From positions 1 through 64,000 of the IMG/VR virus record IMGVR_UViG_3300046092_000062: DNA of 64,000 nt. One strand, written 5' to 3'. Below the pieces are notes generated by a model. The model was not told the origin of the DNA and did no database searches. It worked only from the letters and a program-made list of their open reading frames with translations. The translations under genes were made by a program, and so were the position numbers. Below, piece by piece: positions 6,796 through 63,927 of the stretch. The stretch's first letter is position 1. Each line of letters starts with the position of its first letter.

Positions 6796-6797
6796 TA

Positions 6798-51588: not shown

Positions 51589-52719
51589 ATGCGAAATTTA
51601 ATTAACATTTTTGAAGATCCTGCATTAAAGAAACAAGTTATTGACGTGGTAAAAACCACCGACGATACCTCCGTATTGCAGAAGGTACTTAACACTCTGA
51701 AAGCCGGTAACATCGAGGAACGTATTACTGGCGTTCTATCTAAAGATGCTGATGCGTCACGATTCATTAAACAAATTGCACAAGTGATTGTGCAAATTGA
51801 TGCTCCGGTAGAGAGTAAGGATGCGTTCCTTAAACAATACAAGCAAGGTATTATTGATACTGGAAAGTTAATGGATGGCAATGCTCATTCGTTTGATGAC
51901 TTGATTAGAGGCGACGACTTTGCAAAAGAGTTGTTTATTGTGCTATCCAAAACCCTAACATCACAAGGCGTGGGTCCCGGCGAAGTTGCTCTTGCAGTAA
52001 TGAGTCCGGATATTTCCTGGAGTGGACGTGCAGTCGGCGGCGGCGACATCCAAGTTGGTAGCAAAGCAGTTGAAGTTAAAACCAGCATCTCCAGTGGCGG
52101 ACGTTGGATCAACACTCGTAAAGCCAACATGAACATGCAAGGCATTCTTAAAGCGATTCAAGGTGCAATGGTTCCGGGCCCAAATGGTCAAATCGAAGCA
52201 TTGCCTGAGCGTATCAATCCAGACTACTGGATAAACAAGATCCGCCCAGTTATTGAGCCAACACAGCTCAATGCAGTTACCAAAGTGATGGCCGACGGAC
52301 TGTTTAATGCAGTTGATAACTCTCGTTACCAGCAAGCCCTAGAAGGTGGAGCAGCCGCAGACATCCGTGAAGCTATCCTGGCAGTTGGTTTTGACAACTA
52401 CAAAGAGTATAGTAAGTTTGACGGAATGTTGCTAATGGATGTAAAGACTGAATCCGCGCAGTACTTTGAAGATTACGACTCAATGATTGGCAAGATCAAA
52501 AGCGATATGCCATACATCTATGGCCCCGAGAGCGAAGGTATGCCAAAAGTAACATTACTGCTAGGTGATGCTGGATACGACATGGGCGCAGCAGATTCTG
52601 CACCAGCTGCACCTGTTGCAGCACCAAAGTCTATTGTTGGCGGACATACTAAGATAACCCCTCCTGGTAAGAGATCTGCGCCAGCTGGTGCCGACAACGG
52701 GATGAGAGCAAAACGATGA
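51589..52719 (+). CDS. Hypothetical protein with PD-(D/E)xK-like motif
   Basis: GPGEVAL...GDIQVG.K.VEVKT. Confidence 0.45.
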   Translation: MRNLINIFEDPALKKQVIDVVKTTDDTSVLQKVLNTLKAGNIEERITGVLSKDADASRFIKQIAQVIVQIDAPVESKDAFLKQYKQGIIDTGKLMDGNAHSFDDLIRGDDFAKELFIVLSKTLTSQGVGPGEVALAVMSPDISWSGRAVGGGDIQVGSKAVEVKTSISSGGRWINTRKANMNMQGILKAIQGAMVPGPNGQIEALPERINPDYWINKIRPVIEPTQLNAVTKVMADGLFNAVDNSRYQQALEGGAAADIREAILAVGFDNYKEYSKFDGMLLMDVKTESAQYFEDYDSMIGKIKSDMPYIYGPESEGMPKVTLLLGDAGYDMGAADSAPAAPVAAPKSIVGGHTKITPPGKRSAPAGADNGMRAKR

Positions 52720-52762
52720 AGTTACAATAAAACAACATCAACTAACCCAAAAACGGTACCTG

Positions 52763-52771
52763 TGCTATAAT
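52763..52771 (+). promoter_or_regulatory. Extended -10 promoter
   Basis: TGCTATAAT upstream of lipoprotein gene. Confidence 0.55.
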
Positions 52772-52793
52772 GCAACGTACCGTTTTTTAATGG

Positions 52794-53978
52794 ATGAACA
52801 GAATGCGTAAAACTTTAGTATTACTTTCTTGCCTAGCACTAGTCGCATGTGGCGGCGGTGGGGGTAGTGCTGGCAGCACCGTTGGGGCGCAGCAAAGCAC
52901 AGTAGCTGGAGCAATGACGCAAGTGACATCTGTGGGTCTACACCCAAACACAGTATACAACACAGCAGTCGGCGACCTAACAGGCGATGGACTTGATGAT
53001 GTAGTTATTAGTGGGTGGAATTTTGACGGAACCCCTGCACGGATCTGGGTGTTTGTGCAAAACTCAAATGGTACACTAACTGACAGAACAGATCTGCTCC
53101 CAGTTAATACAGTAAACGGAAGCCAGCATGTGTTTATTGCAGACTTTGACAACGACGGCCGAAACGACATTTTTGTTCCGGGATTTAAAGACGGCGGGGT
53201 TATGGACTCTACTAACAGCGTAATGTTTTGGAACAACGGCGCTTTTACACGTGATGTATTTGCAGATCGCGTAATGGCCCACGGTGCGTGTATTGACGAC
53301 ATCGACAATGATGGTGACATGGATATGTTGGTCTCGGGGGACCAAGGAGCAAGTATTTTATATGTAAATAATGGTAATCGTAACTTTACTGCCGATGTAT
53401 GGAAGTTTGGTGGCCAGTGGTTTGCAACATGCTCAATCACACATCAAGCAAACGGTGATGTTAACGTATTAATGGGTAACAATCGCAGCGTAGCAGGATA
53501 CTCTAGCATTGTGGCAGTTTACAACAGCGCACTACAATTGCAGTACAGTATTGGCATTGGTGCAACAGGGCAGGATGTGATTAATTCGGCAGCAATTGAT
53601 GTTAACGGTGATGGTCGTAAGGATTTTGTGGTAGCCGCAAGCAATTTGCATCCAGCATTACCATCTCGCTATATACTGCTAAACACCGGATTAAATACAT
53701 ACAGTAACGGCGGTCAAATTGATTCGTTGGGTAGCGACTACTACACAGAAATCACAACAGTAAACGGGACTCCTGCTTTACTTCTTGCAGCAACAGCAGG
53801 CGATAGCAGGCTTTATACATTTGCAAACGGAATAGCAACAGCATATCAACCACATGCGTTTAGTGCAATGGCAGGAACAAAGACTGCACAAGCTAATGCA
53901 GTTTACCGAAATATGCACTCAGGAAAGATTTTTATGCTACAATTACTGGATGATGCGTTTTATACGCAAGAGATGTAA
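52794..53978 (+). CDS. Lipoprotein with FG-GAP/VCBS beta-propeller repeats
   Basis: Lipobox LALVAC-GGGG; repeats GDLTGDGLDD, DFDNDGRND, DIDNDGDMD, DVNGDGRKD. Confidence 0.85.
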   Translation: MNRMRKTLVLLSCLALVACGGGGGSAGSTVGAQQSTVAGAMTQVTSVGLHPNTVYNTAVGDLTGDGLDDVVISGWNFDGTPARIWVFVQNSNGTLTDRTDLLPVNTVNGSQHVFIADFDNDGRNDIFVPGFKDGGVMDSTNSVMFWNNGAFTRDVFADRVMAHGACIDDIDNDGDMDMLVSGDQGASILYVNNGNRNFTADVWKFGGQWFATCSITHQANGDVNVLMGNNRSVAGYSSIVAVYNSALQLQYSIGIGATGQDVINSAAIDVNGDGRKDFVVAASNLHPALPSRYILLNTGLNTYSNGGQIDSLGSDYYTEITTVNGTPALLLAATAGDSRLYTFANGIATAYQPHAFSAMAGTKTAQANAVYRNMHSGKIFMLQLLDDAFYTQEM

Positions 53979-53989
53979 ATAAGAATACC

Positions 53990-54064
53990 GCACCAATAGC
54001 TTAATGGTAAAGCAGCCGACTCATAATCGGTCGAGTCTTGGTTCAATTCCAAGTTGGTGCACCA
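53990..54064 (+). tRNA. tRNA-CAT (Ile2-like loop CTCATAA)
   Basis: Cloverleaf, encoded CCA; anticodon arm resembles Ile2 tRNAs. Confidence 0.85.
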
Positions 54065-54069
54065 AATAT

Positions 54070-54144
54070 CTGGCGTTAGTACAATGGATAGTACAATGAG
54101 CTTCTACCTCATGAATGTGGGTTCGATTCCTGCACGCCGGACCA
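54070..54144 (+). tRNA. trnR: tRNA-Arg(TCT)
   Basis: ATGAG-CTTCTAC-CTCAT; CCA. Confidence 0.9.
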
Positions 54145-54154
54145 AACAAATTGC

Positions 54155-54183
54155 TTGACACTCTTGTGTTAAGCATATATAAT
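54155..54183 (+). promoter_or_regulatory. Consensus sigma70 promoter
   Basis: TTGACA-N17-TATAAT. Confidence 0.92.
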
Positions 54184-54192
54184 AGAAGTATT

Positions 54193-54276
54193 GCGAGAGT
54201 GGAGAAATGGTATACTCAGGAGACTTAAAATCTCCCGTCGAAAGGCATACGGGTTCGAGTCCCGTCTCTCGCACCA
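54193..54276 (+). tRNA. trnL: tRNA-Leu(TAA), long variable arm
   Basis: GGAGA-CTTAAAA-TCTCC; CCA. Confidence 0.92.
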
Positions 54277-54293
54277 AATGGTAAAAGTTGTAG

Positions 54294-54322
54294 TTGACAC
54301 AGAAAGACAAGTGTCATACAAT
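54294..54322 (+). promoter_or_regulatory. Sigma70 promoter
   Basis: TTGACA-N17-TACAAT. Confidence 0.85.
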
Positions 54323-54397
54323 TGAGGCTTGTAACAAACAAAGAAACGAAAGTTTAAACAAAGAGATAAATAAATTTACCAGATGTTGTTAAAGAGG

Positions 54398-54426
54398 TTG
54401 ACAACAAAGGTAAATAAACATACAAT
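54398..54426 (+). promoter_or_regulatory. Sigma70 promoter of the main tRNA operon
   Basis: TTGACA-N17-TACAAT; ATG 6 nt downstream. Confidence 0.85.
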
Positions 54427-54432
54427 ACTAAC

Positions 54433-54582
54433 ATGATGCAAAACATTCTTCATTCACTTAAACAACAACAGTCTACCTTAGGCACAGTGGCCTATTGGTC
54501 AGCGATGTCGTTTAGTTTGAATACGAATGATCGCGCACCGGAGATTAGTTTAGGGTTCTTAGAGGGAAGTGGTTACGCTTAA
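54433..54582 (+). CDS. Putative leaderless leader peptide (49 aa) of tRNA operon attenuator
   Basis: ATG at predicted +1; MMQNILHSLKQQQSTLGTVAYWSAMSFSLNTNDRAPEISLGFLEGSGYA*. Confidence 0.55.
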   Translation: MMQNILHSLKQQQSTLGTVAYWSAMSFSLNTNDRAPEISLGFLEGSGYA

Positions 54583-54608
54583 CAAGTAGTAGCTAACAAA
54601 CTTAAAGG

Positions 54609-54638
54609 ACCCTAGGATTAAAAACCCTAGGGTTTTTT
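54609..54638 (+). terminator. Intrinsic terminator / attenuator hairpin
   Basis: ACCCTAGG-loop-CCTAGGGT + TTTTT; left arm can alternatively pair with 54551-54560. Confidence 0.85.
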
Positions 54639-54655
54639 GTTTTAAGGAAGAAATT

Positions 54656-54808
54656 TTGAAGGTAGACTTTAATAAAAGAATTCGTGAAGTAAAGTTTACT
54701 GCCGAGCATACGCTAACAACAGAACAACGTAATACGTTGATTCAAGAAAAGTTAGAACGTGCAAGGAAGGAACTAGAAAGCCGTAAAAAGTTTTCACTTC
54801 ACGCATAG
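54656..54808 (+). CDS. Small hypothetical protein (50 aa, TTG start)
   Basis: AAGGAAG SD; charged helical sequence; first ORF after attenuator. Confidence 0.45.
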   Translation: MKVDFNKRIREVKFTAEHTLTTEQRNTLIQEKLERARKELESRKKFSLHA

Positions 54809-54969
54809 ACAGTGTTAGATAAGTGCTATATGCCCAGGTAACGAGGACCTGAAAGAACACTATAATAATCTTTAAACGGGCGGACAGTTGGATGAAATGC
54901 TGGCGGTAACAGCAGAGTACAAATAACTGGTTAGGGCATTGACCCTAACATATCCTGTAGCAATACAGG

Positions 54970-55048
54970 GTATTCACAAACAAACTAGACGAATCAATTA
55001 TATGATACATTATTGTTGGCAGCGACCCACTAGTTTGTTTATGAATAC
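54970..55048 (+). ncRNA. Long closed-stem RNA element
   Basis: GTATTCACAAACAAACTAG / CTAGTTTGTTTATGAATAC, one C-A mismatch. Confidence 0.55.
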
Positions 55049-55128
55049 CTTAAGGATGAAGATGATAGATAGATTCTGATTCTATACTATGTCCGAGCCC
55101 AGCGCCGGAAACCTTAAGGGATATATTT

Positions 55129-55202
55129 GGGCTGTTCGTATAATGGGATTACACTGGCCTTGCACGTCAGTTATTGGGGTTCGATCCCCCAACGGTCCAC
55201 CA
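55129..55202 (+). tRNA. trnA: tRNA-Ala(TGC)
   Basis: Loop CTTGCAC; G3:U70; CCA. Confidence 0.92.
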
Positions 55203-55207
55203 AATTT

Positions 55208-55282
55208 GGATGTATAGCAAAGTGGTAATGCACTACCTTCATACGGTAACTATCGCTAGTTCGAATCTAGCTACATCCACCA
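55208..55282 (+). tRNA. tRNA-CAT (Met or Ile2)
   Basis: Loop TTCATAC; CCA. Confidence 0.85.
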
Positions 55283-55284
55283 AG

Positions 55285-55431
55285 TTTTGAGATAGACGTA
55301 GGACTTGAGTCCCACATAGCATAGTGTAGTGTCTGCTACATGATAACGCCAGGCTGCTATAGTGGTTGATAAACTCGTCCATACGAGACAATCCAGTGAG
55401 TCCTCCCAGGAGGATAGTTGGGCTCTCAAAA
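55285..55431 (+). ncRNA. Multi-hairpin structured RNA
   Basis: TTTTGAGA...TCTCAAAA closing stem; inner hairpins GGACTTGAGTCC, CTCGTCCATACGAG, TCCTCCCAGGAGGA. Confidence 0.5.
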
Positions 55432-55439
55432 ATCTATTC

Positions 55440-55524
55440 GGGGTTTGAATACGTAACATATAGGACGAAACTGCGTGTAACTCACGTGGGCAGTATCAGG
55501 TGAAAGCCCTGACAAACTCCACCA
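55440..55524 (+). ncRNA. tRNA-like RNA with Ala-type acceptor and non-canonical arms
   Basis: GGGGTTTG/CAAACTCC-ACCA, G3:U70; 5-bp T-stem with TGAAAGC loop; no 7-nt anticodon loop. Confidence 0.6.
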
Positions 55525-55530
55525 ATTTTT

Positions 55531-55605
55531 AGGCTTGACATGAACTGGTGTTCATACTATCCTTACACGATAGATTAGGGAGTTCAATTCTCCACTAGCC
55601 CACCA
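55531..55605 (+). tRNA. trnV: tRNA-Val(TAC)
   Basis: CTATC-CTTACAC-GATAG; weak acceptor; CCA. Confidence 0.8.
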
Positions 55606-55612
55606 AGTTAAT

Positions 55613-55686
55613 CTGGGTATAGGATAATGGTAGTCGACGAGTCTTGGATACTCGAGGCGCTGGTTCGATTCCAGCTACCCAGACCA
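55613..55686 (+). tRNA. trnP: tRNA-Pro(TGG)
   Basis: CGAGT-CTTGGAT-ACTCG (A37); CCA. Confidence 0.9.
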
Positions 55687-55691
55687 ATCAC

Positions 55692-55780
55692 GGGGAGTTA
55701 TGCAGGCTGGGCCTGTCACGGTCTTGAAAACCGATGGACTGCGAAAGTGGTTAGAGTTCGATTCTACTATCTCCCCGCCA
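55692..55780 (+). tRNA. trnS: tRNA-Ser(TGA)
   Basis: Loop CTTGAAA, long variable arm, G73. Confidence 0.9.
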
Positions 55781-55786
55781 ATATAT

Positions 55787-55860
55787 TGCTCGTTAGCTCA
55801 ATGGTAGAGCAGTCGACTGATAATCGACCGACACAAGTTCGATTCTTGTACAAGCAACCA
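55787..55860 (+). tRNA. trnI: tRNA-Ile(GAT)
   Basis: GTCGA-CTGATAA-TCGAC; CCA. Confidence 0.9.
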
Positions 55861-55868
55861 AAGTTAAT

Positions 55869-55952
55869 GGATACTCGACACAGTTGGAGAGGTGTGGCTG
55901 GCTGTAACCCAGTTCGTAAAGTGAGTAGGTTCGATTCCTACAGTATCCACCA
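55869..55952 (+). tRNA. trnY: tRNA-Tyr(GTA)
   Basis: Loop CTGTAAC, long variable arm; CCA. Confidence 0.9.
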
Positions 55953-55959
55953 AGTTTAT

Positions 55960-56036
55960 ATACCAGTAGTTCCAATTGGCAGAACAGCAGTCTCCAAAAT
56001 TGCGTGTTGGGAGTTCGAATCTCTCCTGGTATGCCA
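55960..56036 (+). tRNA. trnW: tRNA-Trp(CCA) with A24
   Basis: Loop CTCCAAA, G73; D-stem GTTC/GAAC. Confidence 0.92.
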
Positions 56037-56041
56037 TATAC

Positions 56042-56117
56042 GCCCCTGAAACCTTTAATGGATGAGGTCCTGTCTTGTAAGCAGGAGAAGTCGGTTCGAT
56101 TCCGGACTGGGGCACCA
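56042..56117 (+). tRNA. trnT: tRNA-Thr(TGT)
   Basis: CCTGT-CTTGTAA-GCAGG; CCA. Confidence 0.88.
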
Positions 56118-56123
56118 AGTTAT

Positions 56124-56202
56124 TCCGAGAAATCCAAGCAAGGTGCAGGGACCTGACTGTTAATCAGTGGTTAGGTGGGTTCGATCCCCACACTCGGAGC
56201 CA
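56124..56202 (+). tRNA. trnN: tRNA-Asn(GTT)
   Basis: Loop CTGTTAA, G73; CCA. Confidence 0.88.
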
Positions 56203-56207
56203 ATCAT

Positions 56208-56379
56208 GTCTAGTTGGAAATGAAAGTAACCCAAAGGGAGCGACCTGAACAATCGCTGTCTAGTACGCTTACAAAGTAATTGTCCTGACTGTTCGACCCA
56301 AGAGGTGTTAAACCCGTAGATTCAGTTCCTACGCTCTCGCTCAAGGGATGTCGCTGTGTCACAGCAGCACTAGGCTCCA
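56208..56379 (+). ncRNA. 172-nt RNA closed by an acceptor-like stem ending in TCCA
   Basis: GTCTAGT/ACTAGGC-T-CCA; interior not a cloverleaf. Confidence 0.45.
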
Positions 56380-56387
56380 ATTTTTAT

Positions 56388-56462
56388 CACTGTGTTTAGC
56401 GGGTCTGCGCAAACCTTGCCAATAGATGGGAATGTGTATTTCGACGTACACCACAGTGGCCA
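56388..56462 (+). pseudogene. Degenerate tRNA (anticodon arm not assignable)
   Basis: CACTGTG/CACAGTG-G-CCA and T-arm present; D and anticodon stems poorly paired. Confidence 0.55.
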
Positions 56463-56469
56463 ATTTTGT

Positions 56470-56543
56470 TCGGGGATGGTGTAATGGTAACACAACAGAC
56501 TTTGACTCTGTCGTTCCGGGTTCGAGCCCCGGTTCCCGTGCCA
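56470..56543 (+). tRNA. trnQ: tRNA-Gln(TTG)
   Basis: ACAGA-CTTTGAC-TCTGT; CCA. Confidence 0.9.
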
Positions 56544-56550
56544 GTTTTAT

Positions 56551-56625
56551 AGTTCCTTAGTTCAGCGGTAGAACGCTACATTGACATTGTAGAGGTCAGT
56601 GGTTCGACACCACTAGGAACTACCA
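56551..56625 (+). tRNA. trnV: tRNA-Val(GAC)
   Basis: CTACA-TTGACAT-TGTAG; CCA. Confidence 0.92.
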
Positions 56626-56628
56626 AAT

Positions 56629-56704
56629 GCAACTTTAGCTGATGTGGTCATAGCGGTGGTCTGAAGAGCCATTGAAGCAGGTTCGATCCCTGCAGGTTGC
56701 ACCA
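56629..56704 (+). tRNA. trnF: tRNA-Phe(GAA)
   Basis: Loop CTGAAGA (G37); CCA. Confidence 0.9.
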
Positions 56705-56714
56705 AAATTTAAAT

Positions 56715-56791
56715 GCCCCGTTACGCTAATTGGTAGTGCGGATTCTCTCAAAAGGAGTTGGCTGTCTGTTCGAATCAGACACGGGGTACCA
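56715..56791 (+). tRNA. trnL: tRNA-Leu(CAA), short variable loop
   Basis: Loop CTCAAAA; 5-nt variable region; CCA. Confidence 0.85.
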
Positions 56792-56797
56792 TACAAT

Positions 56798-56874
56798 GCC
56801 TTCGTACGCTAATTGGTAGTGCGGATAGTTTTAGAAACTGTTGGTTGGGGGTTCGAATCCGCCCGAAGGTACCA
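56798..56874 (+). tRNA. trnL: tRNA-Leu(TAG), short variable loop
   Basis: Loop TTTAGAA; same D-arm as neighbours; CCA. Confidence 0.85.
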
Positions 56875-56877
56875 CAT

Positions 56878-56954
56878 GCCCCTGTACGCTAATTGGTAGT
56901 GCGGACAGACTTAAAATCTTTTGGTTGCAGGTTCGAATCCAGCCAGGGGTACCA
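56878..56954 (+). tRNA. trnL: tRNA-Leu(TAA), short variable loop
   Basis: Loop CTTAAAA; same D-arm; CCA. Confidence 0.85.
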
Positions 56955-56957
56955 AAT

Positions 56958-56986
56958 TTGACACTTAATGAAATGGCTGCTATAAT
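56958..56986 (+). promoter_or_regulatory. Consensus sigma70 promoter (second at 57053-57081, TTGTCC-N17-TACAAT)
   Basis: TTGACA-N17-TATAAT. Confidence 0.92.
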
Positions 56987-57181
56987 ACACACATGTTAAG
57001 AAATTAGCATAAAGTGCAGAGTAGCATAAAAACAACAGTTAGAAAATAACAGTTGTCCAATAAAGAAATTGGTGCTACAATACATACATGTTAAACAAAC
57101 AACGCAGCGCAGTGATCGTACTGTAATGCTAACAGTCTTTAAAAAGATACTGTCATATATCCCTGTTAAGTTCAGGGCTCT

Positions 57182-57262
57182 ATATGCAAACACATTAATT
57201 AACCTGGAGTGCGGTCACAGGGCATCGCAAGGTGTGGTAGCCGTGTTAATGTGTTTACATAT
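57182..57262 (+). ncRNA. Closed-stem RNA element, copy 1
   Basis: ATATGCAAACACATTA ... TAATGTGTTTACATAT. Confidence 0.6.
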
Positions 57263-57265
57263 AGT

Positions 57266-57340
57266 GGAGCTATCGTCTATCGGTTAGGACATCTGGTTTT
57301 CATCCAGGCAAGCGGGGTTCGATTCCCCGTAGCTCTTCCA
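57266..57340 (+). tRNA. trnE: tRNA-Glu(TTC)
   Basis: Loop TTTTCAT; CCA. Confidence 0.88.
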
Positions 57341-57414
57341 AGTTTTTACATTGTTTAAACCGCGGCTGATTTTAAAGTCGGATGAAGGCGAAACTAACAA
57401 TGTGATTCTATTTT

Positions 57415-57559
57415 GTGCTTCATACTATCAATTGGGAGAGCATTACCTAAAACACTAAGTAGGACATCGACAGTAAAGGCCAGTGGCCTAGGATGTGTAA
57501 GCCGTAAGTATACGGTATGTTCAGGTGATGTGTGTAGGTTCGAATCCTACTGATGTACA
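57415..57559 (+). ncRNA. tRNA-like RNA with ~75-nt insert in the anticodon loop
   Basis: Acceptor GTGCTTC/GATGTAC-A (G3:U70), TTACCT/AGGTGA stem around insert, GTAGG-TTCGAAT-CCTAC T-arm; CCA not encoded. Confidence 0.6.
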
Positions 57560-57567
57560 CAAGTTAT

Positions 57568-57719
57568 GCGGGGTCTCACATGGTGTGGCTGAAGAGATTG
57601 ATCACTCGGAGGCGAATGCGAAAATGCGAGGCCTTATGCAAGCAACCCCAAAGAGTAATTCCGAGTAAGGCACTGTAAGCATAAGGGCTTTCAGGGTTCG
57701 AATCCCACGCCCTGCACCA
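57568..57719 (+). ncRNA. tRNA-like RNA with pseudoknotted insert replacing the anticodon loop
   Basis: GCGGGGT/GCCCTGC-A-CCA (G3:U70), TTCGAAT T-loop; ACTCGGA/TCCGAGT and CCTTATGC/GCATAAGG helices cross. Confidence 0.65.
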
Positions 57720-57787
57720 ATCAAGACACATCAAAGTAGCGACTATTGCTGGAGGCGGTAGCACGTAATTAGTGTGTCGAGTTTTTC

Positions 57788-57926
57788 GTGGTAAGTCTGG
57801 AGACAAGTTATTTGACTGTATGCGTAGCAGGATTGCAAACCCGAGGGGCATATGGCGATGGGAAGTGATATCACCCGTTTGTAAAAACAGATGACTAGTT
57901 GGGTTCAACTCCCAATTACTACACCA
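57788..57926 (+). ncRNA. tRNA-like RNA (139 nt) with Ala-type acceptor and long insert
   Basis: GTGGTAA/TTACTAC-A-CCA (G3:U70); TTGGG-TTCAACT-CCCAA T-arm. Confidence 0.65.
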
Positions 57927-58000
57927 TATGCAAACACATTATACAAACCTGAATCAGCAATAGCATTGCAAAGGTTTAAATGTGTAGTGTGTTTACATAT
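57926..58000 (+). ncRNA. Closed-stem RNA element, copy 2
   Basis: Same ATATGCAAACACATTA / TGTGTTTACATAT ends as 57182, different interior. Confidence 0.6.
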
Positions 58001-58002
58001 TG

Positions 58003-58183
58003 TGTTGTTAAGGCTGATGACGGCAATCTGAAAGCAGTCTGAAATCTGACCCTGAAACAAAGTAGCTTTGCCGAGCGAATGTAGACGGAGTCTCTATAGT
58101 GTAGTGGAAGCACACCGGCATAATACGCCGGGGGCCTAGGTTCGATTCCTAGTAGGGTTTATTAGATATCAGCCTTAACAGCA
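58003..58183 (+). ncRNA. Long hairpin RNA enclosing a tRNA-like domain with AAT anticodon
   Basis: TGTTGTTAAGGCTGAT/ATCAGCCTTAACAGCA outer stem; inner D-arm, CCGGC-ATAATAC-GCCGG, CTAGG-TTCGATT-CCTAG; no CCA. Confidence 0.55.
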
Positions 58184-58195
58184 TAAAGAAATAAT

Positions 58196-58281
58196 GGGGA
58201 TACGGCGCAGTTGGAGAGGCGCGGCAGACTGTAAATCTGTTTCCACTGGATGAGTTGGTTCGAATCTAACTATCCCCACCA
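58196..58281 (+). tRNA. trnY: tRNA-Tyr(GTA)
   Basis: Loop CTGTAAA, long variable arm; CCA. Confidence 0.92.
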
Positions 58282-58282
58282 A

Positions 58283-58740
58283 GAATACTAAGACAACACT
58301 TAGTAAGATGAGTAGACGGAAACCGACCCGGGAGAGAATTCCCGGGCTTCAATAATACGAATCACCGGCGAAACGCTGCGGGTCCCGCCCGCTGTATTAT
58401 TGACGAACGATAAGCAAAGTCGGTCCAGTAGGGGTAAGAAAAGTGTTGTTAGCGGAAAGAGCTGCAACGAGACAGAAGTTAAGCGGGCATAGGCCGACAG
58501 TTTAACGCCGTGTATTCTCGAACTAATTCAAGAATTGATCGGAAAGCAAGAGCCGAAGAGTAGACACTAGCGAATGGCGGGCTGCGTTCGCATAAGTTGG
58601 GATAACTGACTAGTAGGGTAAGAGTCCCTAGTATGCCTCCTAATTCACAAATGTAAGATAGTTGCAAATGCGTCCTGCAGGTAAGTTTGCAACCGTAACA
58701 TCACAGACGGGCGACTCTGTGTAAGAAATACGACCCAGAA
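58283..58740 (+). ncRNA. Large (~450 nt) multi-domain structured ncRNA candidate
   Basis: No credible ORF; many hairpins plus long-range ACAACACTT/AAGTGTTGT and CAATAATAC/GTATTATTG helices, between tRNAs. Confidence 0.6.
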
Positions 58741-58746
58741 ATTTAT

Positions 58747-58822
58747 GCTCCATTAGCTCAATTGGGAGAGCGCGACACTGTCACTGTCGAGGTAAGCGGA
58801 TCGAAACCGCTATGGGGCGCCA
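58747..58822 (+). tRNA. trnD: tRNA-Asp(GTC)
   Basis: CGACA-CTGTCAC-TGTCG; CCA. Confidence 0.92.
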
Positions 58823-58829
58823 GTTTTAT

Positions 58830-58904
58830 ATCCTGTTAGATTATCGGTTAGATCAACAGCCTTTCAAGTTGTAGAGACGGGTTCGATTCCCGTACAGGAT
58901 GCCA
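58830..58904 (+). tRNA. trnE: tRNA-Glu(TTC)
   Basis: Loop CTTTCAA, G73; CCA. Confidence 0.9.
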
Positions 58905-58909
58905 GTTAT

Positions 58910-58996
58910 GGATAGTAGTGTGCATGGTGCCGAGTTGGTTTGCTAAACCGATCTACTGCGAAAGCGGTAACAGTTCGATTCTGTTTCTATCCTCCA
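58910..58996 (+). tRNA. trnS: tRNA-Ser(GCT)
   Basis: Loop TTGCTAA, long variable arm; CCA. Confidence 0.88.
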
Positions 58997-59003
58997 AGTT
59001 TTA

Positions 59004-59078
59004 GCGGGTAAGGTGTTTACGGATACACACTAGTCTTCCAAACTTGAGTAGTCGGTTCGATACCGACTACCCGCTCCA
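59004..59078 (+). tRNA. trnG: tRNA-Gly(TCC)
   Basis: Loop CTTCCAA, U73; CCA. Confidence 0.9.
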
Positions 59079-59085
59079 AGTTAAT

Positions 59086-59160
59086 GCCGTGGTAGCTCTC
59101 TGGGAGGGTGCCTCACTGTCGATGAGTTTTAGGCGGGTTCGATTCCCGTCCACGGCGCCA
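59086..59160 (+). tRNA. trnD: tRNA-Asp(GTC)
   Basis: Loop CTGTCGA (G37); CCA. Confidence 0.88.
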
Positions 59161-59163
59161 GTT

Positions 59164-59366
59164 TTGTAAGTGTCAGCAAGAGAAAGTCACGCTATACAAT
59201 ATTCTTCGAAGGTGTTGTATAGTAAAAGGTTAATGGGTTCGAATCCCACCGTGCGCGGGCCATTTGGAGGCTGTACTGGACAAGTATTCCTAGTGGCAGA
59301 CTGCCCCCGTCCGGACTTGTTAATTCGGGTGAAGCGTTGAGATAACAGCGGCTCAACTACTTACAA
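59164..59366 (+). ncRNA. ~200-nt structured RNA with an internal T-loop hairpin
   Basis: TTGTAAGT/ACTTACAA closing stem; GGG-TTCGAAT-CCC at 59235-59247; CTATACAA/TTGTATAG hairpin. Confidence 0.55.
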
Positions 59367-59375
59367 ATTCAATTT

Positions 59376-59450
59376 ACCCGGTTAGCTCAGTGGTAGAGCA
59401 GCGGCTTGATAAGCCGTTGGTCGCAAGTTCAAATCTTGCATCGGGTACCA
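59376..59450 (+). tRNA. trnI: tRNA-Ile(GAT)
   Basis: GCGGC-TTGATAA-GCCGT; CCA. Confidence 0.92.
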
Positions 59451-59459
59451 AAATTTATA

Positions 59460-59487
59460 TTGACATACACAGTTTGTCATATATAAT
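59460..59487 (+). promoter_or_regulatory. Sigma70 promoter
   Basis: TTGACA-N16-TATAAT. Confidence 0.85.
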
Positions 59488-59495
59488 AGTGTTAT

Positions 59496-59571
59496 TGGCA
59501 TATAGCTCAGTTGGTAGAGCGCTTGACTGTTAATCAAGATGTCCCTGGTTCGAGCCCAGGTTTGCCAGCCA
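59496..59571 (+). tRNA. trnN: tRNA-Asn(GTT)
   Basis: CTTGA-CTGTTAA-TCAAG; CCA. Confidence 0.93.
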
Positions 59572-59577
59572 AATTTC

Positions 59578-59651
59578 GCCCCATTAGTTAAATGGTAGAA
59601 CACCGGTTTTGTAATCCGGGGATAGCAGTTCGATTCTGTTATGGGGCACCA
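59578..59651 (+). tRNA. trnT: tRNA-Thr(TGT)
   Basis: Loop TTTGTAA; CCA. Confidence 0.9.
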
Positions 59652-59658
59652 AGGTTAT

Positions 59659-59732
59659 AGCGGGTAGGGCGGCCACCACTCCAGTCTCATAAGCTCGGAG
59701 CATCGCAAGTTCAAATCTTGCACCCGCATCCA
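59659..59732 (+). tRNA. tRNA-CAT with 1:72 mismatch and reduced D-arm (initiator-like?)
   Basis: Loop CTCATAA; A1/A72 unpaired; CCA. Confidence 0.7.
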
Positions 59733-59737
59733 TATAA

Positions 59738-59813
59738 GGGGGATTAGCTCATTTGGGAGAGCGGCTGCTTTGCAAGCAGTAGGTGACCAGTTCGATCCTG
59801 GTATCCTCCACCA
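59738..59813 (+). tRNA. trnA: tRNA-Ala(TGC)
   Basis: Loop TTTGCAA; G3:U70; CCA. Confidence 0.93.
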
Positions 59814-59924
59814 ATATTCACTGAACCAGCAGTAAGCTGGAATGTATAGTAGACGAGAATTAGTGTACTGCTATATGTCTGACACGGACTTGAGTGGACA
59901 GCCCACAGTGTTGTAAATCATATT

Positions 59925-60001
<77 letters not shown>

Positions 60002-60005
60002 ATTT

Positions 60006-60080
60006 GCGTCTGTAGTACAATGGAAAGTACACTAGGCTACGAACTTAGGAATGGTGGTTCGATTCCATCCAGACGCACCA
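60006..60080 (+). tRNA. trnR: tRNA-Arg(ACG)
   Basis: Loop CTACGAA; CCA. Confidence 0.92.
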
Positions 60081-60098
60081 ATCAACAAAGGAAATACA

Positions 60099-60527
60099 AT
60101 GTCAGCATTCAAAGTATTGCGCGGTGAGCGCATTAACGGAATCTTTCTAGGCAACGACAGCTGGGCATTAGTATTCCGTACAGTCAACGGCAAGTATTTT
60201 CGTTTTGACACTCAGAACGATTGTTGCAACAGCGTGTGGTTCAATCACATTAATGGTGCTACTATCCTAGGTGAAGGCAACAGCTTTGACCTATTGCGCG
60301 GCGCATTAGTGACTGAAACAGAAGACAAGGGTTGGGGCGATAATCGCGAAGAAGACGGATACGAAGTAGTTCAAGACGGGTTCTGGACTATCAAAACCGA
60401 CCGCGGCTACATTGATATTGAAGTGCGTAACAGCCACAATGGCTACTACGGCGGATCAGTTAAGCACATCGAAGACTTTGAGCTTGACCAAATCGAAGGC
60501 TTAAAGCAAGTTACGGAAGATTTTTAA
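60099..60527 (+). CDS. Hypothetical protein
   Basis: AAGGA SD; DCCNSVWF and RNSHNGYYGG motifs. Confidence 0.7.
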   Translation: MSAFKVLRGERINGIFLGNDSWALVFRTVNGKYFRFDTQNDCCNSVWFNHINGATILGEGNSFDLLRGALVTETEDKGWGDNREEDGYEVVQDGFWTIKTDRGYIDIEVRNSHNGYYGGSVKHIEDFELDQIEGLKQVTEDF

Positions 60528-60537
60528 AAGGGTAGTT

Positions 60538-60747
60538 ATGTCAAATAGTAGAAACACTTCGTCAGCAGCAGTAGAGCAAGTAGGCAACCGATTTGATTTG
60601 GTGCTTATTGCAAGTGCGCGAGCACGTGAACTCAAGCGAGGACATGCTGCAAAAGTAAGTGGTGCCGGCGGCATTACTGCAACAGTGTTGAAAGAAATTG
60701 AAGAAGGAAAAATTGGCCGCGAGTACTTGAAAAAGTTGCGCGACTAA
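60538..60747 (+). CDS. rpoZ: RNA polymerase omega subunit
   Basis: AVEQVGNRFDLVLIASARAREL..G....V.....AT.L.EIEEGKI. Confidence 0.88.
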   Translation: MSNSRNTSSAAVEQVGNRFDLVLIASARARELKRGHAAKVSGAGGITATVLKEIEEGKIGREYLKKLRD

Positions 60748-60754
60748 GAGTTAT

Positions 60755-60829
60755 GGAGTTGTTAGTTTAGTGGCAAAACCGCGGGTTGTGATTCCGCTAT
60801 CACGGGTTCGATTCCCGTACTTCTCCCCA
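60755..60829 (+). tRNA. trnH: tRNA-His(GTG)
   Basis: Encoded G-1:C73; loop TTGTGAT; CCA. Confidence 0.92.
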
Positions 60830-60938
60830 GAGCCTCGCCGTTGCTAGTGGCGTATAATAGGATAAATTATTAGCACACAGACCCCGTCTTTGGGCAATCG
60901 GACGTTAAACGGTTGTCCACCAATTCATTAAATACTGT

Positions 60939-61997
60939 ATGAAGATAATTGATTGCGATAGCCATTACCTACCACCTACAGTATTTGACCATGTACCAGA
61001 GCATCTAAGGCATTTGTTGCCTACGTTTGATTTCTCGGTTGACGGAAAGTTAAATCGCGTAAATTTTGAAATTGATCCAGTTAAAATTAGTGAAGGTAAG
61101 CCGCCTGAGTCGTTTGGGCAGACTGCCGGAGTAACTAACATTGACAGCAGGATTGAGGATTTTGCTAAGTTAAAAATCACAAAGCAACTGTTGTGTCCGC
61201 AAGAGCTTGCTATGCGGTTTAACTATTCTGTTGAACCAGAACTAGCCGCTGCAATGTGCAGAAGCTACAATATAGAGATTAAGAAAGTGGTTGACGCACA
61301 TCCTGACAAGTTCTTTGCAACTGCACTAGTACCATTGCAGGACATGAAGGCAGCAACAGTTGAACTCAATTGGGCTATACGTCACGGATTTAAAGCAGTA
61401 TATCTTGATAACTCGTTTATATCTGCAGATGGCACAAGTATGCCTACCATGTGTATGCCTGATATTAGTGATCTAATTGAAATCTGTGCAATGCAGAGAA
61501 TAACAATTTATTTTCATAGCATGATGCACCACGTGTTTCCCTTTGACGATCATTATCGCAAATTGCAAAGATTTTTACCCGGGTCAATCCAGCTAAACAT
61601 ATACAGCTTATTGATGTCTGGTATTTTTGATCGTTACCCTGTAATGCAGGTAGTATTCGCAGAAGGGGCAGATGTACATGCGATGCGATCGTACAATACA
61701 GTGCAGGGAGTATTTGAGCGTAAGCTGCCAGACGTACAAATGAAAAATCATCCGCTAGTGTATTTTAAAAATAACATCAGCTTTACAGTTGACATAGAGA
61801 ATACTGCTCTAATGCAACTGCTAATAAAAACTTTCGGAAGCGAACGATTGCTGTTCAGTACAGATTATCCGCACGATGACGAGTCGGGACTAAACCAATT
61901 GCACGACGTGGACGATTTGATTGCATTAAAATTAAGCAATAATGATTTAGAGAACATCGCTTACAAAAACGCCGAACGAATTTTTCGGTTAGTATAG
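60939..61997 (+). CDS. Amidohydrolase-2 family metal-dependent hydrolase/decarboxylase
   Basis: IIDCDSHY, YFHSMMH, LLFSTDYPHDD, NAERIF. Confidence 0.88.
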   Translation: MKIIDCDSHYLPPTVFDHVPEHLRHLLPTFDFSVDGKLNRVNFEIDPVKISEGKPPESFGQTAGVTNIDSRIEDFAKLKITKQLLCPQELAMRFNYSVEPELAAAMCRSYNIEIKKVVDAHPDKFFATALVPLQDMKAATVELNWAIRHGFKAVYLDNSFISADGTSMPTMCMPDISDLIEICAMQRITIYFHSMMHHVFPFDDHYRKLQRFLPGSIQLNIYSLLMSGIFDRYPVMQVVFAEGADVHAMRSYNTVQGVFERKLPDVQMKNHPLVYFKNNISFTVDIENTALMQLLIKTFGSERLLFSTDYPHDDESGLNQLHDVDDLIALKLSNNDLENIAYKNAERIFRLV

Positions 61998-62003
61998 AAT
62001 TGT

Positions 62004-62077
62004 TGGGGATTAGTTAAACGGTATAACTACGGATTTTGATTCCGTCATTAGTGGTTCGATTCCACTATCCTCTGCCA
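62004..62077 (+). tRNA. trnQ: tRNA-Gln(TTG)
   Basis: ACGGA-TTTTGAT-TCCGT; CCA. Confidence 0.9.
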
Positions 62078-62224
62078 AAATTTCATATCCTGTACGAACG
62101 GCAGCTCTTGCTTTTCAGGATAATCTCGTGTAAAATGTTTAACACAAGAGAAGCTCTTAGCATCGGAATAAGTTCCGTTGCCGAGTTTAAGTAATTCATC
62201 GAATCCAGGATTGGGTTTGCTCAT
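62048..62224 (-). CDS. Small antisense late protein (58 aa)
   Basis: Start preceded by TAAATA-CAGT, the spacing seen for other late genes; 3' end overlaps tRNA-Gln. Confidence 0.4.
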   Translation of the reverse strand: MSKPNPGFDELLKLGNGTYSDAKSFSCVKHFTRDYPEKQELPFVQDMKFWQRIVESNH

Positions 62225-62249
62225 ACTGTATTTAACACAAGGAAACAAA

Positions 62250-62753
62250 ATGCCCTGGATCCAAAACGTAGCACGTAGCGATGTCACTAAAGGGTTTCAC
62301 ATCAACCCCGGTGATAACGCTATGTTGATTCAAATCGTTGACTGCGGCAGCGAATTTCCTACTCCCCTTTACAAGTTTAAAGAAGCTCATCAATTTGAGT
62401 TTTTAGATGTAGAGGAAAAGGACTACGTTCTTGAAGAAGAAATGAAGTGCAGTCACGAACAAGCCGCAGAGCTAGTTCGTTTGTTGCAACATGCACTAGA
62501 GAATCGCATGAACGTTATTGTTCATTGCCATGCTGGTGTTTGCCGCAGCGGTGCAGTATGTGAAGTTGGAGTCATGCTTGGCTTTGATGACACTGAAGCA
62601 TTTCGTGCTCCTAACTTGCTAGTCAAGCATCGCATGATGAAGCAGCTGGGTTGGACGTATGATGAGAACGAAGAGCCAACGATCAATGGTCAACCATATC
62701 AATACAGCGCAGGCGGGATCATTTTACCCCCAAGTCACGAAGGTGATATTTAA
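62250..62753 (+). CDS. Cys-dependent (PTP/DSP-type) phosphatase
   Basis: HCHAGVCRS = HCxxGxxR signature; AAGGA SD. Confidence 0.85.
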   Translation: MPWIQNVARSDVTKGFHINPGDNAMLIQIVDCGSEFPTPLYKFKEAHQFEFLDVEEKDYVLEEEMKCSHEQAAELVRLLQHALENRMNVIVHCHAGVCRSGAVCEVGVMLGFDDTEAFRAPNLLVKHRMMKQLGWTYDENEEPTINGQPYQYSAGGIILPPSHEGDI

Positions 62754-63094
62754 TGCACAAAATCTACGTTGATGTTCCGTACGAGTACAACTATGTGTAC
62801 CGAGTTGATCATGATGAGTCCACTGGTCCAGAAGTGCTAGCAAGGGACTTTGGGGTAAAGTTTGCGTTTATTTGCAACGCTGCTCAGAGATTCAGCAACC
62901 CCGAAGGACTTGGAGCAGTGGGCAATACAGGTGATGCTCACGTGGTATGGCTTGAGTCGGAGAAAGACGAATTGTTCTTTCTAATCAAGTCCGGATTTAC
63001 CAAGTTAAATAAAGATGTAGTTGAACTATTCTTGAAAGCAAGATTGGAAGCTATGCGATTAAAAGAGAGGAATGATTATGAAACGTGTAATTGA
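62753..63094 (+). CDS. Hypothetical protein
   Basis: 113 aa ORF, TAATG overlap. Confidence 0.55.
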   Translation: MHKIYVDVPYEYNYVYRVDHDESTGPEVLARDFGVKFAFICNAAQRFSNPEGLGAVGNTGDAHVVWLESEKDELFFLIKSGFTKLNKDVVELFLKARLEAMRLKERNDYETCN

Positions 63095-63749: not shown

Positions 63750-63763
63750 AAAGGAAAATTGAC

Positions 63764-63787
63764 ATGAAACGTTCAGGTAAACGATAG
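63764..63787 (+). CDS. Mini-ORF MKRSGKR ending in TAG followed by a hairpin
   Basis: AAGGAA SD 7 nt upstream; stem GTGTCATCC/GGATGGCAC starts at the G of TAG. Confidence 0.4.
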   Translation: MKRSGKR

Positions 63788-63849
63788 TGTCATCCTAGAC
63801 CCCCGTATGGTCCTGGATGGCACGTAAAAGAAAAATATTTACGATCCAT

Positions 63850-63924
63850 CCACAGCAAACTTTGCTGGCGAAGTACCCGGCTCTTACCCGGACTAACAGA
63901 GTTCGATTCTCTGGCTGTGGACCA
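63850..63924 (+). tRNA. trnK: tRNA-Lys(CTT)
   Basis: Loop CTCTTAC; CCA. Confidence 0.85.
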
Positions 63925-63927
63925 TAT

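Follow-up and report, generated by a model that had tools for sequence, protein, structure and literature searches.

How are the large tRNA gene arrays of jumbo phages regulated? As far as we know and could find, this is essentially unknown. The question is raised by a short segment at the head of such an array in the window analyzed here (a 64,000-nucleotide stretch of a giant phage, positions 1 to 64,000). The original prediction proposed that a sigma-70 promoter, a 49-codon ORF opening at the predicted transcription start, an intrinsic terminator, and a helix competing with this terminator together formed a trp/his-type attenuator that samples the whole tRNA pool and controls the tRNA operon. 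Every sequence element of this observation was confirmed, and the arrangement was also conserved in 21 distinct homologous sequences from about 24 metagenomic contigs of related jumbo phages. On the other hand, the interpretation was only partly supported, as described below.

Sequence elements of the leader region

The promoter (54398-54426, + strand, as for all of the following features) consists of a -35 box TTGACA (54398-54403), a 17-nt spacer, and a -10 box TACAAT (54421-54426), and matches the consensus at 11 of 12 positions. The spacer contains a copy of a conserved motif (GGTAAATAAA, 54409-54418), and another copy (GATAAATAAA, 54365-54374) is located about 30 nt before the -35 box and is conserved in the closer homologs. 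Since GATAAATAAA was not enriched in the window and occurred only at this locus, it was rejected as a general (late) promoter motif; the upstream copy may be an operator or an UP-like element. The ORF (ORF A; 54433-54582) encodes 49 amino acids followed by TAA, and its ATGATG start lies 7 nt after the -10 box at the predicted transcription start site, suggesting that the mRNA is leaderless. Codons 1-37 use 19 amino-acid types, with only Cys absent; the 35 tRNAs in the window serve the same 19 amino acids and none serves Cys, and no tRNA-Cys was found in a further ~6 kb of the same contig. A C/A-rich stretch (AAA CAA CAA CAG, Lys-Gln-Gln-Gln; 54460-54471) is largely conserved at the nucleotide level, and could be an enhancer of leaderless translation, since CA repeats have this effect in E. 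coli (PMC9031893), or a short run of Gln codons.

The predicted terminator consists of ACCCTAGG (54609-54616) pairing with CCTAGGGT (54626-54633), followed by six T (54633-54638). The stem is 8 bp (12 bp with its A/U extension), and the extended hairpin has a free energy of -15.6 kcal/mol. A consensus scan did not list this + strand terminator because its 9-nt loop exceeded the limit of 8, while the same palindrome was listed on the - strand. The competing helix, originally described as 10 bp, was longer: 12 bp between region 2 (54549-54560), inside codons 39-43 of ORF A with the core A-GGG-UUC at 54552-54558, and region 3 (54605-54616), including 3 G-U pairs. Region 3 is the shared arm, which can pair either with region 2 or with region 4 (54626-54643), the latter comprising the 3' arm of the terminator (54626-54633) and the U-tract TTTTTTGTTTT. 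The 2:3 helix was part of the minimum-free-energy fold of 54433-54645 (-57.9 kcal/mol, z = -2.87). In the window alone, it was only moderately beyond chance: the duplex energy was -16.5 kcal/mol against -10.9 +/- 2.2 for dinucleotide shuffles, and 1.8% of shuffles did as well; the real weight comes from its conservation in every homolog. Between regions 2 and 3 lies an inner hairpin (54571-54594; GGUUAC at 54571-54576 with GUAGCU at 54589-54594), with the stop codon (54580-54582) in its loop, which may act as a pause or nucleation hairpin.

The gene immediately downstream is not a tRNA but a small protein gene (ORF B; 54644-54808), with a Shine-Dalgarno sequence AAGGAAG at 54644-54650, a TTG start at 54656, and 50 amino acids. 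No promoter was found in the 18-nt gap after the terminator, so ORF B would be the first gene that depends on read-through. ORF B was present 20-40 nt after the T-tract in every locus with downstream sequence. It is followed by a conserved structured RNA (54809-55128), for which RNAalifold on 5 sequences predicted 78 pairs, 20 of them with compensatory changes, and by the first tRNAs of the main array (Ala-UGC and Met-CAU; 55129-55282), which continues to the end of the window. Control of this array can only be partial, because consensus promoters lie upstream at 54155 and 54294 and inside the array at 56958, 59460, and 63556.

No DNA similarity to cultured phages was detected at blastn sensitivity, the upstream 376-amino-acid protein had no match, and the closest TerL (53% identity) was in PA5oct-like Pseudomonas jumbo phages. 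Rfam searches returned only tRNAs over 52000-64000 at E <= 1, and only noise (all E >= 1.7) on 54380-55135 at E <= 10, with no T-box (RF00230), no curated leader family (Trp, His, Leu, Thr, and others), and no match for the structured RNA. Neither ORF A nor ORF B matched a Pfam or PHROG family. An AlphaFold2 model of ORF A, using a 26-sequence alignment, had low confidence (pLDDT 58.8, pTM 0.14) and no secondary structure, so that the peptide is predicted to be unfolded, and a covariance model of the switch found only the one copy in the window.

Conservation and covariation among related phages

The ATG was located 6-9 nt after the -10 box in 21 of 21 homologs. The promoter with the ATAAATAAA spacer was conserved in 20 of them, while the locus L041 (handles of this type denote individual homologous loci) had TTGACA-17-TATAGT. 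ORF A (43-63 codons) was open in all homologs and every indel was a multiple of three, whereas indels after the stop codon were not. A T-run was present in all homologs, and the terminator stem was kept through three variants with compensatory changes: CCCUAGG/CCUAGGG, CCCUGG/CCAGGG, and ACCCUGGA/UCCAGGGU. For the inner hairpin, 91.7% of cells in the 21-sequence alignment were paired, and 3 of 6 pairs showed a change on both sides. tRNA arrays followed the module in 17 of the 18 loci with enough downstream sequence.

Covariation of the competing helix (7-13 bp among homologs), which had been set as a test of the original prediction, was examined in several ways. Region 2 was inside the last codons in 21 of 21 homologs. 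The 7-bp core paired in 18 of 18 haplotypes, the flanking positions +4 and +6 covaried (position +4 showed UA 10, UG 4, CG 4, and CA 0, and position +6 showed UA 4 and CG 4), and pairing was 83% in register against at most 57% when the partner strand was slid. Cognate strands paired better than permuted ones (P about 0.0004-0.001), although a comparison of cognate with non-cognate duplex energies over the whole upstream region was too noisy (-15.0 against -13.6 kcal/mol). MAFFT alignments put the GGGG subgroup one column out of register and misplaced L023, and realignment with a covariance model kept the offset; on this model-fitted alignment, 76.3% of cells paired against 73.7 +/- 0.6 in shuffles (0 of 500 reached the observed value), with a covariation score of 0.139 against 0.103 (0 of 500), so that pairing is underestimated, and the core counts and the comparison with permuted strands above came from an analysis anchored on the GGG/CCC core. 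These statistics are modest, were not corrected for phylogeny, and rest on perhaps 5-7 independent lineages.

The two folds were nearly iso-energetic, differing by -5.6 to +5.3 kcal/mol in 17 homologs, and masking a ribosome footprint at the stop codon gave the terminator fold in 15 of 17. The distance from region 2 to the P-site of a terminating ribosome was 17-21 nt in 16 of 17 homologs, even in C-terminally frame-shifted variants (L033 and L043), while that in L023 was 4 nt. In the window, region 2 lies just outside a canonical footprint of a ribosome at the stop codon; therefore, blocking would have to be steric or come from a trailing ribosome.

High amino-acid diversity was a family-wide property: 18-20 types were used in 45 of 45 peptides (null 16.1 +/- 2.2; P(>=19) = 0.11). 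Codon diversity was also high, with 36 of 49 codons being distinct (null 28.3 +/- 3.5; P = 0.011) and 35-39 distinct codons in the family. These results gave moderate support to the proposal that the ORF samples the whole tRNA pool, although the excess in amino-acid diversity has a P of only about 0.02-0.1 if family members are treated as one observation. In contrast, the claimed agreement with the 19 amino acids of the phage tRNAs did not generalize, because the peptides of L002, L017, and L019 contain Cys while no tRNA-Cys lies in about 10 kb downstream. Furthermore, ORF A codons were no better matched to phage tRNAs than those of ordinary phage genes (38 of 49, 78%, against 80%), and "moving singletons" of Cys and Val were, by our estimate, compatible with chance given proteome frequencies and were not accepted as proof of selection for completeness.

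Interpretation as a putative ribosome-dependent attenuator

We propose, with moderate confidence, that the element is a ribosome-dependent transcription attenuator built around a leaderless upstream ORF. In this model, host sigma-70 RNA polymerase starts at or next to the A of ATG 54433, so that the transcript has no 5' UTR and a 70S ribosome can load as soon as the 5' end emerges. If a ribosome translates to the stop codon (54580) in step with the polymerase, it would cover or sterically block region 2 and melt the inner hairpin, region 3 would pair with region 4, and transcription would end at the U-tract to give a ~205-nt RNA. If initiation fails, or the ribosome lags or stalls anywhere in roughly the first 35 codons, region 2 would be free to capture region 3 before region 4 is made, and the polymerase would read through into ORF B, the structured RNA, and the tRNA array. 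Since the ORF uses 19-20 amino-acid types and about 36 different codons rather than a run of one codon, the read-out would be general translation capacity (tRNA supply, charging, and ribosome availability) rather than one amino acid, giving homeostatic feedback on phage tRNA expression. The analysis itself established the anatomy, its conservation, the covariation, the near-equal energies of the two folds, and the downstream synteny, whereas the transcription start site, termination, translation of the ORF, the ribosome as effector, the dependence of read-through on translation, the sensing of stalls, and the direction and physiological trigger of the switch were inferred from sequence alone.

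Sequence variability was consistent with an ORF that doubles as regulatory RNA: synonymous sites were constrained (pS 0.43 against 0.70 for ORF B), and variability was flat across codon positions (0.22/0.19/0.22), while ORF B showed a normal coding pattern (0.32/0.25/0.42). Several points weigh against the model. Leaderless translation is inefficient in many Proteobacteria. Transcripts from the upstream promoters at 54155 and 54294 would carry the ATG internally with no Shine-Dalgarno sequence and, on this model, would read through constitutively, diluting any control, and strong internal promoters feed most of the array. In addition, the invariance of several peptide positions (W22, S23, D33, and nearly R34) goes beyond what a pure "any codon" sensor needs.

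Other explanations appear less likely. ORF A may be an ordinary small-protein gene acting in trans, with the hairpin being a leaky or bidirectional terminator of its short mRNA and the 2:3 complementarity tuning terminator efficiency or 3'-end stability constitutively, independent of ribosome position. The wide peptide family (32 protein clusters), the invariant W22, S23, and D33, synonymous changes at several conserved residues, a median dN/dS of about 0.6, and the trans functions of attenuator leader peptides such as peTrpL (PMC7968998) are in line with this reading. However, it is unlikely because of the constrained synonymous sites and flat codon-position variability, the conservation of GGGTTC as nucleotides across a 1-nt frame offset in the GVREG subgroup, the tolerance of frame-shifted C-termini while the stop-codon position is kept, the unstructured, low-confidence AlphaFold2 model, and the absence of Pfam or PHROG matches, and it does not explain why region 2 covaries with arm positions that are neutral for the terminator. 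Similarly unlikely is an RNA switch operated by a trans factor, in which the nucleotide-conserved 5' domain (54433-54545) would bind a phage or host protein, a tRNA, or a metabolite, and the ORF would be secondary. Conservation there is strong, including at four-fold degenerate sites (GGC, GCC, GAT-CGC, and UGGUC are invariant), small conserved hairpins are predicted, with the indel-rich segment in a predicted loop, and the locus-specific GATAAATAAA repeat hints at extra regulation. In spite of this, no Rfam family matched, T-box included, even at E <= 10 on the short region, no covariation supported any 5' helix because those pairs never vary, and the frame-preserving indels, the universal 5'-terminal ATG, and the fixed stop position are left unexplained.

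The most doubtful alternative is that the ~205-nt terminated transcript is mainly a trans-acting small RNA (possibly also coding), made in large amounts, with conserved single-stranded stretches as seed regions and the two folds as conformers of the mature RNA. The strong consensus promoter followed by a terminator, the conservation at synonymous sites, and known attenuator-derived sRNAs such as rnTrpL (PMC6614838) are compatible with this, but no target was identified, ORF B and the downstream RNAs would still need read-through, and ORF conservation is unexplained; this reading does not exclude the attenuator.

The proposed link to anticodon-nuclease defence is pure inference. In its boldest form, which is unlikely on present evidence but not excluded, the module would be a phage-encoded sentinel for attacks on the translation apparatus: stalling on any of the ~36 different codons, caused by host tRNA-targeting defences (anticodon nucleases or tRNA-depleting abortive-infection systems) or starvation, would boost the phage's own replacement tRNAs, ORF B, and the structured RNA, as an inducible counter-defence circuit monitoring nearly the whole decoding repertoire. 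Large phages often carry dozens of tRNA genes, and a conserved translation-sensing attenuator at the head of such arrays would be the first cis-regulatory logic proposed for them, linking phage tRNA supply to the state of the host's translation machinery. This bears directly on the current debate over whether phage tRNAs serve codon-usage compensation or escape from tRNA-cleaving defences. The element is compact (about 245 nt) and easy to move into reporter systems.

Comparison with known attenuation systems

By its anatomy, the element has the short upstream ORF in cis, the (predicted) intrinsic terminator before the downstream genes, and the mutually exclusive antiterminator within reach of the ribosome that are found in leader-peptide attenuators in the broad sense. 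T-box riboswitches are also transcription attenuators that read tRNA status, but they bind uncharged tRNA directly without a ribosome, and neither Stem I nor the T-box motif was detectable here; UGGU near the inner hairpin is not universal, being AGGU in L016 and L040. Classical leader-peptide attenuators (trp, his, leu, thr, ilv, and phe) share a leader ORF, a 2:3 antiterminator competing with a 3:4 terminator, and a stop codon placed so that a terminating ribosome interferes with region 2. However, the originally claimed match to the trp/his layout was not supported. No conserved 1:2 pause or anti-antiterminator hairpin was found (RNAalifold proposed only a 3-bp contact between CCC and the GGG of region 2, with no compensatory change), and absence of translation should therefore give read-through rather than super-attenuation. 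There is no run of cognate codons apart from KQQQ, which varies among homologs (QKQ, KQQP, and QTTQ), the composition is otherwise maximally diverse, the ORF is 49 codons rather than 14-32, the mRNA is (by prediction) leaderless, and the cargo is RNA genes.

The closest known systems are the mycobacterial whiB7 uORF attenuator and leaderless sensory short ORFs. The leaderless sensory short ORFs of mycobacteria (polycysteine LL-sORF attenuators; bioRxiv 10.1101/834739) also have a 5'-terminal AUG short ORF as the first cistron, on which ribosome position remodels downstream mRNA structure to control operon genes. They differ in sensing one amino acid through a Cys run, in acting on translation by unmasking a ribosome-binding site rather than on an intrinsic terminator, and in occurring in Actinobacteria, where leaderless mRNAs are common. 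In the whiB7 uORF attenuator of mycobacteria, a long, compositionally diverse uORF (about 40-80 codons) without a dominant sensing run, as in the phage element, is followed by alternative antiterminator and Rho-independent terminator structures; efficient uORF translation gives termination, and translation stress of many kinds gives read-through. The M. smegmatis uORF also encodes every amino acid except Cys, and responds to depletion of 18 of 20 amino acids (PMC10274678). The phage element, if it functions as proposed, would extend both leaderless sensory uORFs and such general stall sensors beyond Actinobacteria into phages. On the other hand, the whiB7 attenuator is chromosomal and controls a transcription factor rather than tRNA genes, its uORF is Ala-enriched and poorly conserved in sequence, and it was not described as leaderless in the text that we consulted. 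Since there is no sequence or Rfam relationship, the phage element, which is nucleotide-conserved and located in a phage tRNA region, is an analogue rather than a member of the whiB7 type.

Leader anatomy and its homologs

All of the elements of the original prediction were present at the stated coordinates: a promoter with TTGACA at 54398-403, a 17-nt spacer and TACAAT at 54421-26; an ATG at 54433, 7 nt after the -10 box, opening a 49-codon ORF that ends with TAA at 54580-82; and a terminator with a stem of 54609-16 and 54626-33, followed by six T (-15.6 kcal/mol with its A/U extension). The first 37 codons use 19 amino-acid types (all but Cys), and the 35 tRNAs of the window serve exactly those 19 amino acids; furthermore, no tRNA-Cys appeared in the next ~6 kb of the contig. 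The observation itself was therefore confirmed, although the alternative helix, which had been predicted to be 10 bp, was in fact longer: 12 bp, 54549-60 (region 2) with 54605-16 (region 3, the arm shared with the terminator). This helix was chosen in the minimum-free-energy fold of the whole leader (-57.9 kcal/mol, z = -2.87). On the other hand, since 1.8% of dinucleotide shuffles offered the terminator arm an equally good upstream partner, the evidence from this single sequence was suggestive only.

The window represents the first 64 kb of a 320,767-bp IMG/VR contig of a jumbo phage with T4-like replication and recombination genes, and the large terminase was 53% identical to that of PA5oct-like Pseudomonas phages. 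No DNA match to the leader region was found among deposited phages. Homologs were collected using an anchor protein, a conserved downstream RNA motif, the promoter pattern, and a profile of the peptide followed by inspection of the contigs, giving 32 peptide clusters and 21 distinct DNA versions of the element from about 24 contigs. Peptide identity to the window fell as low as 41-50%.

The promoter was conserved, including an ATAAATAAA motif in the spacer, and the ATG (usually ATGATG) lay 6-9 nt after the -10 box in all 21 versions. The apparent exception, the homologous locus L041, uses a second promoter, again with an ATG 6 nt after its -10 box; upstream of this promoter, which drives the 63-codon leader ORF in that lineage, an ancestral-looking copy of the module's promoter (2895-2940; TTGACA, a spacer containing AAATAAACA, then TATAAT) is followed by a 2-codon ORF (ATG TGT TAA). 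A leaderless mRNA is therefore a conserved design feature, as inferred from spacing alone. The conserved C/A-rich stretch AAACAACAACAG follows shortly after the start, and CA repeats enhance leaderless translation in E. coli (PMC9031893). In the window, (G)ATAAATAAA occurs as a direct repeat, once upstream of the -35 box (54365-54374) and once in the promoter spacer (54409-54418), 44 nt apart. The spacer copy was conserved in 20 of 21 homologs. Since the motif was found nowhere else in the window's promoters, it may be an operator for a dedicated regulator.

Competing helices and evolution of the leader ORF

The terminator was present in all homologs, and its stem occurred in three forms related by compensatory changes. 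To examine the competing helix, the analysis was anchored on the invariant GGG (region 2) and CCC (arm). The 7-bp core R-GGG-U-Y-C with G-R-A-CCC-U was paired in 18 of 18 distinct haplotypes: position +4 showed U-A (10), U-G (4), C-G (4) and never C-A; position +6 showed U-A (4) or C-G (4) where it was paired; and positions -2 and -3 switched between U-A/U-G and C-G. Pairing was 83% in register, against at most 57% when the partner strand was slid by one or more positions. Since the arm positions that covary with region 2 face the U-tract in the terminator fold, where A and G are both acceptable, the covariation is not a by-product of terminator maintenance. Cognate strands paired better than permuted ones (P about 0.0004-0.001, without phylogenetic correction). 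In a general analysis of a model-fitted alignment, 76.3% of cells were paired against 73.7 +/- 0.6 (0 of 500 shuffles), with a covariation score of 0.139 against 0.103 (0 of 500), although these figures underestimate pairing because one subgroup is a column out of register in that alignment.

In the GVREG subgroup of homologs, the GGGTTC motif sits one nucleotide off relative to the reading frame (G-V-R instead of G-F-L); that is, the nucleotides are conserved, not the amino acids. The two folds differed by only -5.6 to +5.3 kcal/mol across 17 homologs, and when pairing was forbidden in a -15 to +15 footprint of a ribosome whose A site holds the stop codon, the terminator fold was obtained in 15 of 17. 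The stop codon always lay between regions 2 and 3, in or near the loop of a conserved inner hairpin, and the distance from region 2 to the terminating P-site was 17-21 nt in 16 of 17 homologs, including variants whose C-terminal frame has shifted.

The leader ORF stayed open in every homolog, and all indels within it were multiples of three, while those just after the stop codon were not. In spite of this, it did not evolve like a normal protein gene: variability was flat across codon positions (0.22/0.19/0.22) and synonymous divergence was low (pS 0.43, pN 0.29), whereas the neighboring ORF B in the same genomes gave 0.32/0.25/0.42, pS 0.70 and pN 0.42. Four-fold degenerate codons such as GGC, GCC and CGC were invariant. 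An AlphaFold2 model of the peptide using a 26-sequence alignment showed no secondary structure (pLDDT 58.8, pTM 0.14), and no protein family matched. We interpret these results to mean that translation and frame, as well as the RNA sequence, are under selection, but a folded protein product is not evident.

The proposal that the ORF samples the whole tRNA pool was examined by its diversity. Among 45 unique family peptides, 15 contain all 20 amino acids, 28 contain 19 (25 lacking only Cys and 3 lacking only Val) and 2 contain 18, whereas random 49-residue windows of this phage's proteins gave 16.1 +/- 2.2 types, with P(>=19) = 0.107 and P(20) = 0.021; the ORF B family has 14-18 types. The window's ORF uses 36 distinct codons in 49 (null, 28.3 +/- 3.5; P = 0.011), and homologs use 31-43. 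Conditional on the amino-acid sequence, the expectation was 31.4 +/- 2.0 (P = 0.016), and all four Gly codons occurred in 17 of 19 homologs. However, since family members share ancestry and several of these codons sit in RNA helices, this signal is moderate, not decisive. Furthermore, the codons were not preferentially those read by phage tRNAs (38 of 49 against a background of 0.80), and Cys in the peptide did not track tRNA-Cys in the loci retrieved.

Genes and RNAs around the module

ORF B (50 aa) starts 18 nt after the U-tract, with an SD at 54644-50 and TTG at 54656; it has no promoter of its own and was present in every locus with downstream sequence. It is followed by a ~320-nt structured RNA (54809-55128 in the window; 8733-9053, 10333-10655, 6510-6861 and 9040-9375 in the homologous loci L001, L002, L016 and L019, respectively), for which RNAalifold predicted 78 pairs, 20 with compensatory changes among these 5 sequences. 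This RNA matched no Rfam family and was far more conserved than the flanking small ORFs. tRNA-Ala and tRNA-Met follow, and then the rest of the array; tRNA arrays followed the module in 17 of 18 informative loci. Rfam also gave tRNA-like hits that were not called by ARAGORN, at 55692-55776 (tRNA-Sec-like, 42.9 bits), 56124-56199 (tRNA, 29.3 bits) and 55537-55605 (Tymo tRNA-like, 28.8 bits), which may be degenerate or unusual tRNAs within the array.

Control of the array can only be partial, because consensus promoters also lie upstream (54155-54183 and 54294-54322) and inside the array (56958-56986, 59460-59487 and 63556-63584). Together with that of the leader (54398-54426), these perfect or near-perfect sigma-70 consensus promoters are concentrated in the tRNA region: all five exact TTGACA-N17-TAYAAT matches in the 64 kb lie there, and allowing one mismatch gave 11 matches in the window, against about 1 expected by chance. 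Just upstream of the module, relatives carry a 92-nt "tRNA-Ile (TAT)" call, possibly intron-containing, next to a 379-423 aa ORF with a PP-loop SGGxDS motif, which could be a tRNA-modifying enzyme (L001, 7019-7110 and 7112-8251; L002, 8482-8573 and 8544-9815; also loci L016, L017, L019, L021, L028, L033 and L045). The window lacks both, and keeps only the promoter that overlaps the end of that ORF (54294-54322). In another relative, L040, ARAGORN called a permuted tmRNA with a 32-residue tag ending in ALVA (2296-2736) immediately upstream of the module, while a second terminator-like hairpin (AACCCTAC/GTAGGGTT followed by a T-run; 4217-4278), preceded by a G-rich GGGTTAC stretch, lies further down the tRNA region and may be another switch of the same style.

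Proposed mechanism and comparison with known systems

The best-supported model is a ribosome-dependent attenuator without a region 1. In this view, a ribosome that reaches the end of the leaderless ORF in step with the polymerase would prevent 2:3 pairing, and the terminator would form, whereas failure or delay of translation at any point would free region 2, and transcription would read through. The attenuator architecture is strongly supported by the comparative data, while the transcription start site, translation of the ORF, ribosome dependence and the physiological trigger are inferred. The interpretation originally proposed was thus supported only in part: ribosome dependence is plausible, being about as likely as not; design as a "whole-pool" sensor is possible, but held only tentatively; and a role as a defence sensor is speculative and unlikely.

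Alternatively, the ORF may encode a trans-acting small protein, with the hairpin as a leaky terminator; the switch may be run by a trans factor binding the conserved 5' RNA; or the transcript may be a trans-acting sRNA. Although each of these readings explains some of the conservation, none explains the combination of a universal 5'-terminal ATG, frame preservation, a fixed stop position and an antiterminator strand that always lies inside the ORF.

In contrast to the original proposal, the element is not of the trp/his type, since no codon run, no 1:2 hairpin and no Rfam leader hit were found. Full-text literature searches found no description of such an element in phage tRNA regions. Functionally, the closest system is the mycobacterial whiB7 attenuator, in which efficient uORF translation gives termination and many kinds of translation stress give read-through. 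Leaderless sensory short ORFs are also known in mycobacteria (10.1101/834739). Compared with these systems, the new aspects are the phage setting, the RNA-gene cargo, the (inferred) leaderless design combined with an intrinsic terminator, and the strong nucleotide conservation.
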